Below, in pieces: positions 43,191-49,440 of a DNA stretch of 64,000 bases. Each line of letters begins with the position of its first letter. The stretch's first letter is position 1. Made by a program: the position numbers and the translations under genes. The notes below the pieces were generated by a model. The model saw nothing but the letters and a program-made list of their open reading frames with translations. It was not told the origin of the DNA and ran no database searches. This DNA comes from Mytilus californianus (taxonomy: Eukaryota): positions 9,486,001 to 9,550,000 of the forward strand of contig NW_026262701.1 of NCBI RefSeq assembly GCF_021869535.1, read 5' to 3'.

Positions 43191-45074
43191 ACGGTTTCCA
43201 ATTATGTAATCATTCAACATTTCAAATAATAAACTAGCAACAGCGCCACACATAGACAGTGAATAATATATTAACTGCAATTTCCAACTGATTTACAGTT
43301 TATCCGTATGTGGTTTTGGTACACCACGTTCCCATTAAAAAAATGGGGGAACACCAACAAACAAGTTTAACCCCGCCACAATCTTTTTTTCAAAGAATAA
43401 ATCAATAGTTGTACATATATAATCACTGGATAATTCTTTTTGTGGGACAAACTTAGACATGCAATATCATTTTGACGGAAAAGAAAAAGTCCAAAGAACT
43501 GAATCTAAATATGGTTGTATCGTTTTCGGTTATACTCCATATTCATACATTTAGCGCCTTGTACAATAAAACTGTGTCGTGGAAATAATAATTTTTTTTA
43601 TCAGGCTTAGTCAATCTATTGACGGCGTCATATGTCTTTTATTGACGTTTTGATGCAGTGTGATTTTAAACGTAGAATCGACTGCTGAATTTGTATTTAT
43701 CATTTAAAAAAGTTACAGTAGATATGTTATATAAATTTGAATTGTAATAACTATTTCGTACACCTACTACACTAGATTTAACAAGAGAATTGAAATGTGT
43801 TTATAACTTACCTTTGTTACCGTTATTATATTTATCGACAGAACATACATGACAAAATTGATTTTCATTAAATATACTTAATTTGGTTAGCTTCTTAAGA
43901 ATATATACGTTATCAACGTTTTAAACGTTCTTCCTTGATTTCATCTGAATCGAACATCAAATCATTATTGTATTTATAGTTTACTTAATTTGTACTTTAT
44001 CGAGAAAGTGTATACTATATAAGATATGTACTATCAACTACAAAATTTTTTTTATTTGCATGTTTGTCAATATACTATCAACTACAAAAAAGTTTTTTTG
44101 ACATCATTGTCAAATTTACTTTTAAATACAACTTATTTTGTGACGTCTTTGTTAGATTTATTGTATGTTTTTTTTTAATTGTTTAGCCAGTTGTGTTGTA
44201 TGTTTGTTATATATGTTTACATAGTTTTGGCTGATGGATCCCGATTATTGCCACTTTAACCTATTATGTCGGTTTGGGTTGATCATCCAATTTTGTCAAT
44301 ATAACGGACCTATAAACTGTCATACAAGTGGGAGGTTTAGCTAGCTATAAATTCAGGTTTGACCCACAATTTTCTACTAGAAATGCCTGTACCAAGTCAT
44401 GAATATGACGATTGTTTTCCTCTCGTTCCGTTGGTTAATACGTTTGCTTTTGTCAGTTTGTATGGACTATCTTCTTCTTCTTCTTCTTCTTCTTCTTCTT
44501 CTTCTTCTTCTTCTTCTTCTTCTTCTTCTGGAAGTCCACCCTATTTGCAGGGTCACCGCATTAAAAATATTATTATTTATATTTTTAAAAATGCGTCACT
44601 TTATAAAATTAATAGATTAACATATTTTAACTATGTGAGGGTAAAATAAAGTAAAATATAAAGAATAAAGGTAAAACTTGTATTTACACTGTAGACTGAC
44701 ATAAGCTTAAAACATTATATTTTAAAATGGATAAAACTTTAATTGGTGTGTTAAAAGTGTCCAATAGTTTAAAAATAATTAATGGGATAAGGATTTTTTA
44801 TGTCAGTACTGATAAAAAGTTCAACAATCACATAGGGGTTCCATACCTTAAATTTATTGTTAAAATTTTAAATCTTGTGAAGGACCCAATTGATCGGTTT
44901 TAATTAGTAAATGTTGTTGTTTATATGTAAAATATAATGCAGGGGTCATATAGTTATAAATTTACTAACGGATATAATCTGTAGCTATTTCCCTCTAAAT
45001 TATTTCTATTCTCATGACCGACAGTATCCAGCTTATAAAGTTCCAAGAGTTAAAAATGAATGTTCATTATATTT

Positions 45075-46950
45075 ACTGTAGTAATTCCGCTCTCTTGGTA
45101 TGCAATGCATATACCCAGTCTTTCATATTCTTTCTATAGCAACTAGGTGAGTCACAGATATGTGACGTTTGCTGGAACAGTTAACTAGTAATTGAAGCAG
45201 ATCGTCTTCAGATGTTGAAGTTGATATGTAGTTTAGCCATCAGATGTTTAAATTTGGTGTAGTGGAATTTTCTCACTGATTTGAGGCTTATGCAGTTAAC
45301 AAGAAAGTGCTTGTAATCTTCTGTTTACACAATTTGAACTCTGCAGATTTTGTTCAGTCAAAGAGGTTGTCAATGCTTTGAGTTTTATATGTCCCGGTCA
45401 ATATTCTGAATTTTATTATTCCTTTAGCAACATCTCGCTTGTTGTCTCTGACACTGCTCCAACATGTATTAGGTTTTCTGAAGTTCCAATTGCTTACTTC
45501 CATATGATTACGTGATGTTTTGGTTTTAGCTAATTTAGGACATTTTGTTTTCCATGTTGAATCTATCATATCATGAACCATTTTTGTCCAGTTTTTCCTT
45601 TCGATTTAAGATTATCTCATGTGCAGATGGTAGTTTATACGACTTGAGAATACTATCTACTTTTATACATCTCATGTTGCTAATTGTTTTATTCCTATTT
45701 GATGTTCAATCGAATTTGTATCTTTTGAAATTCTAAGGATCAAATAAATCATTGCTTTGTGGATAAGTTGTTCTACAGATTCTGCCCCAACCAAAATATA
45801 TATTGCAGCATCTGCGGTCCGTTGTGGTAGAGACAGTAGTTGTTAAAATGTCTTTTTCTTAAAGTTTTTTAGTTTTAAAATGTCTGTCTTGGTGAAGTTA
45901 AGAATTTCAACACCATATAACATTCGTGGTATGACATAAGTTCGCCAAAGTTTGTATGATATCAATGGATTTATTCCGTTAATTCCATGTAGACCTGATC
46001 CCATGAGAGTTGCTCTAGCAGTAGAAATTCTCTATACTACATTTGGGCTATTTCGGTCCTGTCTTTCAATACCCAGGTGCTCTATGTTGTGTTTTTCACT
46101 TATCTTCTCGTTAAACAGTTCAAGATTAGGTTTGTTCTTTTTGTTAATCAACAGTATTTCAGTCTTTTTACTATTGATCTTAACTCGATCATTTTTGGTA
46201 CAGCTTTCAATGATGCATAGTTGAGCTGATGCATCCTGTTCCGATGTTGCACATATATAGCATAATATCATCTGCGCATGTTGGACAACCCAAATAATTG
46301 ATTCCGATCTTAAAACCGATATCTGTTGCTTTGAGTGTATCTAGAATATTCTTATTGTAAGTTTTGTAAAAGCTAGCAGATAAAATACCTCCCTGCTTTA
46401 CTCCTTGCTTGTTAGTGAATGCTTCCGAGATACGTCCGTGAGATTTTACTTGGGTTGATGTATTATTATATAGTTCTCTGATCAGAAGCCAGGTTGACTC
46501 TGTGATTCCTTGGTGAAATAATTTCCAAAAAAGATGTATGTGATCTACGACATCGAATGCCTTTTCTGCATCTAGGGTGGCACCTTTTGTAAAACCTTTT
46601 TGCAGTCTATTTTGTTGTTTTTTTAAAGTGCCTTCAATCCTAGGTCTGAAGCAGAGTTCTAAAACTTTACAAATGATCGAGATGACCGTTATTCCTCTAT
46701 AATTTGATGGTATTGTTGGGTGTTTGTCTTTTTTATGGCCTGGAGTTAGAAGTCCCTTTTAATAGCATCAGGCACATGTTTTGTGTAGAAGATGTTATTA
46801 ATGAGAGTTGTCATGTAGTCAGTTAGAGCTAAACCTCCGTATAGTAGATGTTCAGATGTTAAACCGTTTACATCTCCAGATTTCCTTTTTGTTTTTAGAT
46901 GTGAAACCAGTCGGACTTTGGTAGAGTAGACAACCAAACAAGTTTTTACT
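45075..46950 (-). pseudogene. LINE reverse transcriptase with C-terminal Cys/His region, frameshifted
   Basis: KSGDVNGLTSEHLLYGG, SNYRGITV, Q.GF, LDAEKAFDVV, QGVKQGGILS, GCPTCADD, HLGIER, YVIPRMLYG.E, RILTGTY. Confidence 0.9.
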
Positions 46951-47900
46951 ATCTTAATCCCTTGATAATAAGTATGTTGTTCTAGCTCTGAAGAGATTAT
47001 TGACTTGTTTTCTTGAGTTAATAACGAAATAGAAGATATAGCTTATATAAATATATTCTTTAAATGACAGGGTATACAGATATTAAAATCATGAGGTTGG
47101 ATATCCTTGGGAGTACAATTATTTAATCCTCTTTGGACAGCAAAACTGTTTTTACTATCTTGTTTCCTTGACTAGTATTATTGAGTATGATATAAAAGAA
47201 AAATACTTTGATTATATGCAATGCTTGCTGAAATGTTCCTTCTTTTTTTAAAGCTTTATAAGTTGTGAATGAACTTGTTATGATACTATGGTACTGTGGT
47301 CAGCAAAACAGTTTTTACTATCCTACTTCCTTGACTAGAATATTGAGTAGAATACAATATATTTGATCCTTTTCAGACAATGACTGCTGTAATTTTAACT
47401 TGTACAGGTTTATTATATTTTGAGTGTATACTTGATGGTGTTTCTCTTTGGACAGCAAAACTGTATTTACTATCCTGAACTCTTAAATACATATCCTTTT
47501 GGAGAGAGTGTCAGTTGAAATTAAACTTATAAATTTAAGATATTCACTAGTACTGTTCTCTAGACAGCAAAACTGTTTTTACTATCATAAATACTGAAGC
47601 AGTGTCAGAGATATTTATTTGTTGCTATAGGTAGTTGCATGTGATGTGAATTCCTAAATGTTGATGAACTTGGATAGATTTTTTCCTATTTTTTTATGCT
47701 GGATGAGTCAATTAAATTATAGTTATACTTTATTTGACAGCTAAATAGTTTTTACTATCGTAACTATAAGGTAAACTTTGATGTTATAAATAAATTTTAC
47801 TTTAGAACCCAGTGAACATTGGTTGGTTTAGCTTGGTAATTGACAATTAAGTGTCAATAGTTAGACGTAACTTAATAAGCAGCAAAACTGTTTTTACTAC
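46931..47900. repeat. Seven interspersed copies of a 22-bp dyad motif CAGCAAAACTGTTTTTACTATC
   Basis: Copies start at about 46931, 47138, 47301, 47453, 47565, 47738 and 47880; core AAAAC-T-GTTTT is palindromic. Confidence 0.9.
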
Positions 47901-47994
47901 TAATTTTCAGTATCTTGATTTATTTAGGTACGTCTGTGTGTGTGTTTGTGGCGACTCTTCTTTGTTTTTGTAAAACAGTCAAAAACAATTTTGC

Positions 47995-48706
47995 CTACCG
48001 CTGGTACCATAACTTAGCTAGTAGCGGTTTTGGGTGTTCCCCATCCAGTTATACTTGTTTGTAGTTGCAGTGGCTGTGTGCTTTTGCTTTCTGACCTTTG
48101 TGGCCTTTTGTTAGTCGTATCAAGTCGAGTGAAAATCTGGGAGATCTGGCCTGTTCTGTGTTATTCAACTGACGTATCAGGTTGTTTATCGAATCAATTT
48201 GTTTGGCTAATTTTATATCGTCCTCATAAAAAGAATGAGGATCTGGGTGACTTCTTGACGCATTAAATTCAACTATTGAATAGTGAGGGATTTCAAGTAG
48301 GGTTACTCGCGGTGTATTCTTTTTCCGGGGTACCTTTATTGCCAGAGTTAGGTCTTCAAATTTGTCCTGGATGTATTTTAGGATAGTAGATGTGTTTTGA
48401 AATCTCAATTTCAGGAATTTCCCTAATTTGGTTGTAGCGTCACATGTGCCTAACCAAACATAAACGTGTATGTGTTTGAACCTTTTTGTGCGTTTGTGTA
48501 GATTGTTCCTGACTCATAAGATGGAGTCCCTAAGTCTTGAACGTGATTGTTTTACAAACAATATTACGTTCATCCACATTGGTGACCTCACGTTTGATAT
48601 AAGCCCCCTTACTGTCAGAGAGAAGAACAGGAGTGTGTTTCTGCTGCAAACCTGCAGTGTTGACTTTGATTTGTCTCAGACTTCTTCTTATATAGCTATC
48701 GGTCAT
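47995..48706 (-). pseudogene. SGNH/GDSL esterase-like ORF1 of the LINE
   Basis: PVLLSDSKG (block I), VYVWLGTCD (block III), LDGEHP (block V); a few stops and frameshifts. Confidence 0.8.
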
Positions 48707-49440
48707 GAGAACAGACTTGCTCGGCAAGGAGTAATAATTAAAATATAAAGAGGTTTGGGGTTTTACAGTATAAGGAATAAAAAAAAACAAGATAAAATAA
48801 CAGAAAAAATGGAGGTCACGTACGATGTTTTGTGTGCCTACATGATGGATCTAGTCAGCAGAGAAAGTTTATTATTTATAATATATTCTAAAAATGGACG
48901 ATGGATATTACGATATTAATAAACGGTATTTAACTGTTGTATATTAAGGAATAATAAAATAAATGCCTTCTTTTTTTTATAAGGGCGGGTATTTACAAAC
49001 CTCGATCTGCACGGGCGGAATTCTAAGTTTTAAATTTGATTGTTTTTAAGGAGTATTTTTTGTAAAATCTATTACTAAATGTAACTGTATTGTTTTTTAA
49101 ATGTTTTAAGTGTTGCAAATTGGGTGGATCAGTGTGGAATTCCTGAAAAACTTTCAAAATTCGTCTCCGTGAAAAAATCAACCATGCTTGTCAATAGTCT
49201 CGTTTTCATCCTGTTCGAGGAAAAAATTCCGGAAACTCTTTGATCATGACTATCTCTTTAAGAATTTACCTTCGAGTTTGGTATTTTTGTAATACTTTTT
49301 CAATTATATGCAACAAAGATTTTCCATAAAGATTGATCAAGTCATGCCTCGAAAAAAGAGATGAATTCAAGTCAACCTCGAAGAACTCTTGGTATTTGTG
49401 TTCTCAAATATTGAAATTTTCCAGACTTTTGGACTCCATC

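Follow-up and report, generated by a model that had tools for sequence, protein, structure and literature searches.

Why does a short motif recur, at irregular intervals and with dissimilar sequence in between, beside a decayed reverse transcriptase (RT) in a mussel genome? The question is raised by a 64,000-nt stretch of Mytilus californianus DNA (GCF_021869535.1, contig NW_026262701.1, positions 9,486,001-9,550,000 of the forward strand), here called the window, which carries on its minus strand the remains of a long interspersed nuclear element (LINE). The original prediction for this locus described a repeat-spacer array of palindromic 22-bp DNA motifs coupled to the RT. We find that the motif is a strand-specific, selected RNA stem-loop on the sense RNA of the element, not a DNA palindrome, and that intact elements couple the array to an upstream open reading frame (ORF) for a predicted esterase-like protein, ORF-E, not to the RT. 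Architecture was read from the fuller copies L012, L015, L016, L011/L021, L018/L023, L025, L026 (M. galloprovincialis) and L029/L030 (M. edulis); a distant intact relative, L027, is a Logan contig.

The motif is an RNA stem-loop under selection

A pattern search with the 22-mer, allowing at most 3 mismatches, returned six plus-strand matches in the window (47138, 47301, 47453, 47565, 47738 and 47880), for which 100 shuffles gave a chance expectation of 0, and a seventh, half-degenerate copy was found at 46931-46954. The array and its spacings of 207, 163, 152, 112, 173 and 142 bp were as originally described, and so was the divergence of the spacers, among which spacer-to-spacer alignment detected no similarity except between u2 and u3. 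When the seven units were aligned, the mean identity was 46% and the similarity was confined to the motif; Tandem Repeats Finder (TRF) reported no tandem array.

The unit itself proved to be different from the one proposed. Across 77 instances, drawn from the approximately 13 genomic loci that match with at most 1 mismatch, the conserved unit is 24 nt long with sharp edges (GACAGCAAAACTGTTTTTACTATC on the plus strand) and flanks of about 0 bits. On the minus strand, the sense strand of the LINE, it reads GAUAGUAAAA-AC(A/U)G-UUUUGCUGUC (with ACAG as the loop in the pooled reading), in which a 10-bp AU-rich stem carries a 4-nt AC(A/U)G loop; the dyad AAAAC-T-GTTTT noticed earlier falls short of this whole. 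Two U.G wobbles are conserved in the stem, which would be C.A mismatches on the plus strand. A covariance model of the 24-nt hairpin (R1) was run on the fetched loci and genome-wide. The hairpins of the window, with their R1 scores and, for two of them, minimum free energies (MFE), are as follows.

46931..46954, minus strand: hairpin 7, degenerate (R1 22.3 bits, E 0.015), orthologous to intact hairpins in L012 and L016
47136..47159, minus strand: hairpin 6, perfect consensus (R1 50.4 bits; MFE -8.8 kcal/mol, 10-bp stem-loop on the minus strand only)
47299..47322, minus strand: hairpin 5, one broken pair (R1 42.5 bits)
47451..47474, minus strand: hairpin 4, closing pair broken (R1 46.6 bits)
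47563..47586, minus strand: hairpin 3, perfect consensus (R1 50.4 bits; MFE -9.6 kcal/mol, z -3.15)
47736..47759, minus strand: hairpin 2, decayed by one loop and one stem change (R1 40.9 bits)
47878..47901, minus strand: hairpin 1, nearest the esterase ORF, with compensated G2-C23 and A1-U24 pairs (R1 43.6 bits)

Folding in ViennaRNA, a check suggested with the original prediction, separated the two strands: the minus strand folds into exactly this hairpin, at -8.8 to -11.4 kcal/mol (z -2.4 to -4.3), and the plus strand gives no such fold. In the 77-sequence alignment, 92.8% of cells pair versus 32-54% with slid partners, and 23 double-sided compensations were observed versus 4.4 expected, a count as high being reached in 0 of 500 shuffles. 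These double-sided changes fall in four pairs (G-C/A-U, A-U/G-C, A-U/U-A and A-U/G-C), and a fifth compensated pair is C-G in L027. The 120 R1 matches in the fetched loci show 93.3% pairing and 45 compensated cells versus 9.1 expected; all 120 lie in sense, and the best antisense score is 17.9 bits versus 53 bits in sense. The motif thus combines the compensatory changes and the strand specificity of a structured cis-acting RNA element.

Selective retention of the motif, as originally suggested, is borne out by comparing motif with spacer: between subfamilies the hairpins are 83-87% identical, whereas the spacers are 47-50% identical. Within the window's own subfamily the gap is small (89-93% versus 80-89%), as decay after insertion would lead one to expect. 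Wherever copies were examined, across subfamilies and in two or more Mytilus species, the same array occupies the same position, so that it belongs to the retroelement, as had been supposed, and is not an inserted satellite. L027, which has an intact ORF-E (59% identical) and an open ORF-P, the PHD/coiled-coil ORF that follows, retains six hairpins within the corresponding spacer, of which four carry C-G where Mytilus copies show A-U or U-A, and a change of U.G to C-G is also seen.

In the 1.65-Gb genome the motif occurs 35 times at about 13 loci with at most 1 mismatch (reversed control, 0), and genome-wide R1 matches map to the same loci. The search for the motif outside the element that had been proposed therefore found it only at loci of this element family. 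An Rfam scan gave no family match, its lone hit being a tobacco mosaic virus (TMV) pseudoknot elsewhere in the element at chance level (E 0.3). A resemblance to splice sites, tRNA or snRNA, considered by eye only, was set aside, all of these approximately 13 loci coinciding with element homology.

Three other readings of the motif bear on these data. If it were an array of palindromic transcription-factor sites in double-stranded DNA, it could serve as an internal promoter or enhancer, and the recurrence of an imperfect palindrome every ~100-200 bp, in numbers that vary among copies, would suit such a role; but each of the two conserved asymmetries is exactly a U.G pair on one of the strands, compensation follows RNA pairing (A-U becoming G-C, U-A or C-G, among others), the orientation relative to the element is invariant, and the array comes after the first ORF instead of standing at the 5' end. 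The promoter monomers of the mouse L1 5' untranslated region (UTR) likewise form a variable-copy array inside a LINE, but they are head-to-tail DNA repeats at the 5' end and conserved over the whole unit, whereas the mussel array keeps 24 nt per unit, follows the first ORF and shows its evidence at the RNA level; units alike over their whole length, as in such monomers or in tandem satellites, are not what TRF and the mean identity of 46% reveal. Since the evidence is that of an RNA stem-loop on the sense strand, the DNA-palindrome reading is left unsupported, and we regard DNA sites as very unlikely. A neutral remnant left by an early tandem duplication, or by an unrelated satellite, with the motif kept by chance or gene conversion, might explain why u2 and u3 share some spacer sequence and why array segments are locally amplified in tandem in L017 and L029. 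It is highly improbable, however, given the sharp motif edges amid random flanks over 77 instances, the significant covariation, the restriction of the motif to this element family genome-wide, and its persistence across subfamilies, at least two Mytilus species and a 59%-identical relative while the spacers are unalignable; a tandem repeat or satellite was rejected, TRF reporting nothing. Hardly credible, finally, is a repeated peptide (DSKNSFAV-like) conserved as protein. Three units of a second cluster, described below, do lie in one frame, 171 and 159 nt apart, and read D/N-S-x-N-S/C-F/I-A-V, but the spacings of the spacer cluster are not multiples of 3, the AUG-adjacent unit is in another frame or upstream of the AUG, one frame has a stop, codon positions are equally conserved, and the changes are RNA-compensatory, not synonymous; frames and substitution pattern led us to reject it.

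Element architecture and the deletion in the window copy

Apart from the hairpins, the following parts of the element are found in the window.

44465..44535, minus strand: (GAA)n 3' tail of the LINE, read directly; homology with other copies stops here
44536..46910, minus strand: decayed 3' part of the LINE, with the RT-bearing part of ORF2 (many stops) and the 3' UTR, from RT motifs and homology
46905..46930, minus strand: internal deletion junction, ~3.6 kb lost, from comparison with L015 and L016; RT-side homology starts here
47998..48706, minus strand: ORF-E remnant with stops and frameshifts; tblastn against the intact ORF-E P0002 covers residues 1-237 at 60-65% identity
48707..49255, minus strand: presumed 5' UTR; in the intact relative L027 the ORF-E AUG is preceded by 424 nt or more

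The RT expected of a LINE is present as motifs such as LDAEKAFD in the translation of 44536..46910 and as RVT_1 in sister copies: the RT piece of the window is 51% identical to the RT ORF of L025, which matches Pfam RVT_1, and DNA homology of the 3' part was found in L015, L016, L017 and L019. Read in sense, the window holds the ORF-E remnant, the array, the decayed RT region and (GAA)n; the order in fuller copies is ORF-E, a spacer, ORF-P, an apurinic/apyrimidinic endonuclease (APE), the RT and the (GAA)n tail. The ORF-E/ORF-P spacer of these copies, 0.8-1.1 kb long, contains 6-9 hairpins. The array begins ~25-150 nt past the ORF-E stop codon and ends 13-31 nt before the next AUG, which opens the PHD/coiled-coil ORF1 (13-15 nt past the last hairpin in fuller copies, ~30 nt in L027). 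A second cluster of three hairpins, in one frame at spacings of 171 and 159 nt, lies in the ORF-P tail, 250-300 nt ahead of the endonuclease domain. The endonuclease (EN) upstream of the RT was recognized as Exo_endo_phos in L025 (E 1.3e-6) and weakly in L016, and EN motifs are in-frame in L021. The element appears to be an APE-type retrotransposon without long terminal repeats (non-LTR) that is CR1/L2-like, a label taken only from its ORF1 types (esterase, PHD) and its simple-repeat tail.

At the junction, L015 and L016 carry 2.5-4.1 kb that are absent from the window. Relative to L016 the deletion amounts to ~3.6 kb, and its junction lies ~19 nt past hairpin 7, where the array alignment stops. 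Missing from the window copy are the final two hairpins of the spacer, the PHD ORF with the hairpin cluster in its frame, the APE endonuclease and the beginning of the RT region. It is because of this single ~3.6-kb deletion that the window is without an endonuclease and that its array adjoins the RT. The contact between the last motif copy and the RT, as first noted, is thus real in the window but a product of the deletion at 46905-46930, and the endonuclease thought to be missing sits between array and RT in sister copies. As a LINE, the window copy is dead and internally deleted, its array is without current function, and it is not an endonuclease-free system; an endonuclease-less LINE with the motif as its primer site was rejected on the same grounds.

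Array segments vary locally among copies. In M. edulis (L029:7323-8512), the in-frame cluster ahead of the endonuclease is expanded to eight copies, with six of the seven spacings (198, 198, 198, 132, 78 and 150 nt) being multiples of three and the remaining one 196 nt. Local tandem amplification with a period of ~1035 bp was seen at L017:6500-9700 and L024 (G000:C88:76.23 Mb), the repeated segment holding the PHD ORF start and hairpins; at the same locus a 64-68 bp piece that matches window 45946-46009 stands in tandem in about eight copies.

ORF-E and its hairpins across element families

ORF-E is a stand-alone ORF of 269 aa, the decayed copy of which lies in the window at 48706-47998 (minus strand). 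Searches of Pfam and PDB sequences with ORF-E were blank or weak. A six-sequence model was too poor, and only the AlphaFold model from 13 diverse homologues, with a predicted local distance difference test (pLDDT) of 79.6, showed a clear SGNH fold: all top Foldseek matches are SGNH/GDSL hydrolases (best E 2.3e-5), platelet-activating factor acetylhydrolase (PAF-AH) included. Residues S32, G87 and D222-x-x-H225 are nearly invariant. By this model ORF-E has the SGNH fold, and its product is predicted to be esterase-like. The genome abounds in ORF-E (147 matches or more, a good many of which are open), and the LINE-type version ends in a tail rich in K, R and H.

The hairpins are absent from relatives that have no ORF-E. 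Homology of ORF-P with the ORF1 of the more distant LINEs L032, L033 and L034 begins at its very first residues (the longest protein returned in the search for ORF-P relatives had 993 aa), and in these relatives, which have ORF1 and EN-RT without ORF-E, no such hairpin was found. Two-ORF LINEs among them have an EN-RT frame that is open well before any AUG (L032:2600-3200 and L033:2400-3000) and that in L032 overlaps the end of ORF1, which suggests that they use unconventional ORF2 initiation or frameshifting.

Where ORF-E is present, hairpins tend to lie downstream of it in sense. At 19 other ORF-E loci, a crude search set to stems of 7 bp or more found 8 ACWG-loop hairpins downstream in sense versus 0 in each of three control compartments, upstream or in antisense; hairpins with any tetraloop numbered 25 downstream in sense versus 2 in antisense of the same DNA. 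The families have their own hairpin versions, namely GGUGAGA-ACWG-UCUUGCC (two copies), UGGUGAGG-ACUG-CCUCGCCA (three copies), GGUGAGA-AUUG-UCUCGCC, UUUGGUGAUG-AUUG-CAUCGCUAAA (five copies) and, in L055, AGUGUGGG-YUUU-UCUACGCU (six copies), and family-specific arrays comprise five copies in L056/L045, six in L055 and three in L057. An RGU/GCY base with a U.G wobble is common to all hairpin families. Aligned from the loop, the upper stems covary freely across 7 types (position 2 is A-U, U-A, C-G, G-C or G-U), and the step of U.G followed by G-C is near-invariant in types 1-6 and is shifted by one pair away from the loop in the 8-bp stem of type 7; as this cross-family set was selected by at least 7 pairs, its pairing percentage is circular, and only sequence diversity, repetition and position are informative.

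A second, better preserved three-ORF LINE family is represented by L055:884-7882 (G000:C24:53005500+), in which an open ORF-E of 246 aa is followed by six hairpins, a PHD ORF of 378 aa and an RT ORF of 677 aa (RVT_1, E 5e-21), the array ending 27 nt before the AUG of the PHD ORF. Several other hairpin versions belong to gag-protease-RT elements, where ORF-E and the hairpins precede gag: ORF-E stands at the 5' side, then 1-3 hairpins, then gag (CCHC), a protease-like region and RT.

L026:468-4184, minus strand: gag-pol-type ORF-E element with the same order of ORF-E, hairpins and gag
L035, L036, L040/L058, L041, L043, L046, L047, L049, L051, L052 and L057: the same gag-type order

Because this order recurs at many independent gag-type loci, a nested accident is excluded. 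It is to the esterase-like ORF upstream that the array is coupled when the architecture is intact, and the earlier notion of a repeat-spacer array coupled to an RT does not hold.

The mussel LINEs resemble the LINEs of the CR1/L2 lineages with an esterase-type (type IV) ORF1 (Kapitonov & Jurka 2003; PMC3905857; PMC4120745) in having an SGNH-fold ORF 5' of APE and RT, and a PHD finger in the same element. Unlike in those elements, the mussel esterase is an extra, stand-alone ORF ahead of the PHD ORF1, with the hairpin array between the two; a hairpin array between ORFs is not described in PMC3905857 or PMC4120745. Esterase ORF1s were placed only in vertebrate groups, where other ORF1 types are replaced (PMC4120745), and the present data document a three-ORF LINE architecture in a mollusc. 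As in bdelloid rotifers, where GDSL esterases are shared between retroelement classes (PMC5408684), esterase-like ORFs occur in LINE-type and gag-pol-type elements of one genome, but in the mussel the ORF travels with a cognate hairpin just downstream; the words hairpin, stem-loop, IRES and spacer are absent from the text of PMC5408684. The occurrence of the ORF-E and hairpin module in both kinds of element bears on module swapping among retroelements.

Possible roles of the array

Of the functions listed in the original prediction, multimeric binding sites and translation signals still lead, while priming sites substituting for an endonuclease are unsupported. We tentatively favour the reading that the hairpins are cognate multivalent binding sites for assembly of a ribonucleoprotein (RNP) in cis, with a candidate partner that is inferred. 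An element-encoded protein, most likely that of ORF-E, would be released at the ORF-E stop codon, would load onto the hairpins of the same RNA molecule and would nucleate the RNP in cis; cis loading is favoured by the position of the sites right after this stop codon. Reportedly, esterase ORF1 proteins interact with RNA while having no RNA-binding domain that is defined (PMC3905857), and an arginine-rich motif has been proposed as their RNA-binding element (Schneider et al., PMC3905857). As the basic tail of ORF-E resembles that motif, ORF-E is favoured as the RNA partner. Each esterase-bearing family has its own hairpin version on the shared RGU/GCY base, which looks like private recognition among competing retroelement families.

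Dispersed small hairpins with a conserved loop and base and variable spacers are also known from the multi-hairpin packaging signals of RNA viruses and the coat-protein operators of MS2 and PP7. There, too, some hairpins lie in coding sequence and versions are family-specific; no capsid is known for the mussel elements, and the likeness would be an analogy of mechanism, not membership. The 3' stem-loops of stringent-type LINEs (UnaL2/ZfL2-2) are recognized by the element's own ORF2 protein (PMC4176376). They share with the mussel hairpins a short conserved stem-loop in LINE sense RNA, for which recognition by the element's own protein and family differences are here proposed, but they are single, stand at the 3' end beside the tail and serve template choice by the RT. 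The mussel LINE instead has 10-12 internal copies, between ORFs and in an ORF tail, tied to an esterase ORF; all copies are internal, and R1 finds none near 44465-44700.

A wider reading, about which we are more doubtful, is that ORF-E and the hairpin form a portable, co-evolving protein-RNA recognition cassette exchanged between mussel LINEs and gag-pol retroelements, with the SGNH-fold protein, possibly by a basic tail, reading the private hairpin version of its own RNA. If so, esterase-type ORF1 proteins would gain from it a defined RNA target and a mechanism of cis preference. How such proteins find their RNA is an open question, and the study of ZfL2-1 ORF1p stresses that they have no defined RNA-binding domain (PMC3905857); a conserved, covarying and family-specific array right after an esterase ORF offers a concrete candidate target.

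Several points weigh against binding by the ORF-E protein. Any protein partner of the hairpins is conjectural. A basic tail is absent from the C terminus of the gag-pol-type ORF-E examined (L026), and the crude search, set to stems of 7 bp or more, turned up no hairpin array in ORF-E families at ~39% identity (L047-L053). The copies of this genome are all old (at most 89% identity) and broken, and a ~6% sample of one RNA-seq run from the same organism showed no expression of the window copy, its 13 reads, mostly partial, lying over the ends of the stretch and running into another repeat near 49156-49300. Moreover, a last hairpin 13-31 nt before the next AUG and a second cluster just ahead of the endonuclease fit translation equally well.

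Translation accordingly furnishes the main rival, one that we consider rather unlikely: the hairpins would recruit or tether ribosomes, as a site of internal ribosome entry (IRES) or a reinitiation enhancer, for the ORF after ORF-E, and the in-frame cluster would do likewise for EN-RT. In favour of this rival, hairpins extend throughout the spacer, the final one standing 13-31 nt ahead of the AUG in four lineages and also in the second LINE family, and the second cluster is followed by the endonuclease domain at a distance of 250-300 nt. The L027 spacer, inspected by eye, holds many AUG triplets, which makes plain scanning or reinitiation across it unlikely; relatives without the extra upstream ORF are also without hairpins, and their ORF2 has no AUG at its start, so that unconventional initiation seems normal in the clade. 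However, a host ribosome or factor should keep the loop constant, whereas loops (ACWG, AUUG, YUUU) and upper stems vary by family; five to nine copies over 1 kb exceed the need of a restart signal, the individual hairpins are weak (about -9 kcal/mol), and gag-pol-type elements have only 1-3 copies, at least 60 nt from the gag AUG. Binding of a host RNA-binding protein, for localization, export, stability or escape from silencing, has a precedent in the localization stem-loops of the I-factor and gurken. The AU-rich stems are conserved in sequence as well as structure, and an RGU/GCY base with a U.G wobble in all families could mean one common host partner, but such a partner does not require the tight coupling to ORF-E or the family-specific upper stems and loops, and we judge this explanation improbable.

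Some minor observations concern the surroundings of the element. High-copy short repeats lie on its 5' side (window 49156-49300 and L016:8440-8500): the depth of a different high-copy repeat rises from about 49156, the depth at 49156-49300 jumps ~10- to 500-fold depending on the run, and a 62-bp piece of these 5'-flanking repeats has dozens of genomic matches at 87-95% identity. Just before (GAA)n, at window 44536-44570 (minus strand), is a separate small hairpin, ACCCU-GCAAAU-AGGGU, which is unrelated to the 24-nt hairpin and could be the 3' recognition element of the RT. Just upstream of the element copy in L025 (L025:9-2900), an open ORF of 963 aa, which has a 'DGNC' cysteine-protease motif of OTU-like type and matches nothing in Pfam, is probably part of another mobile element.

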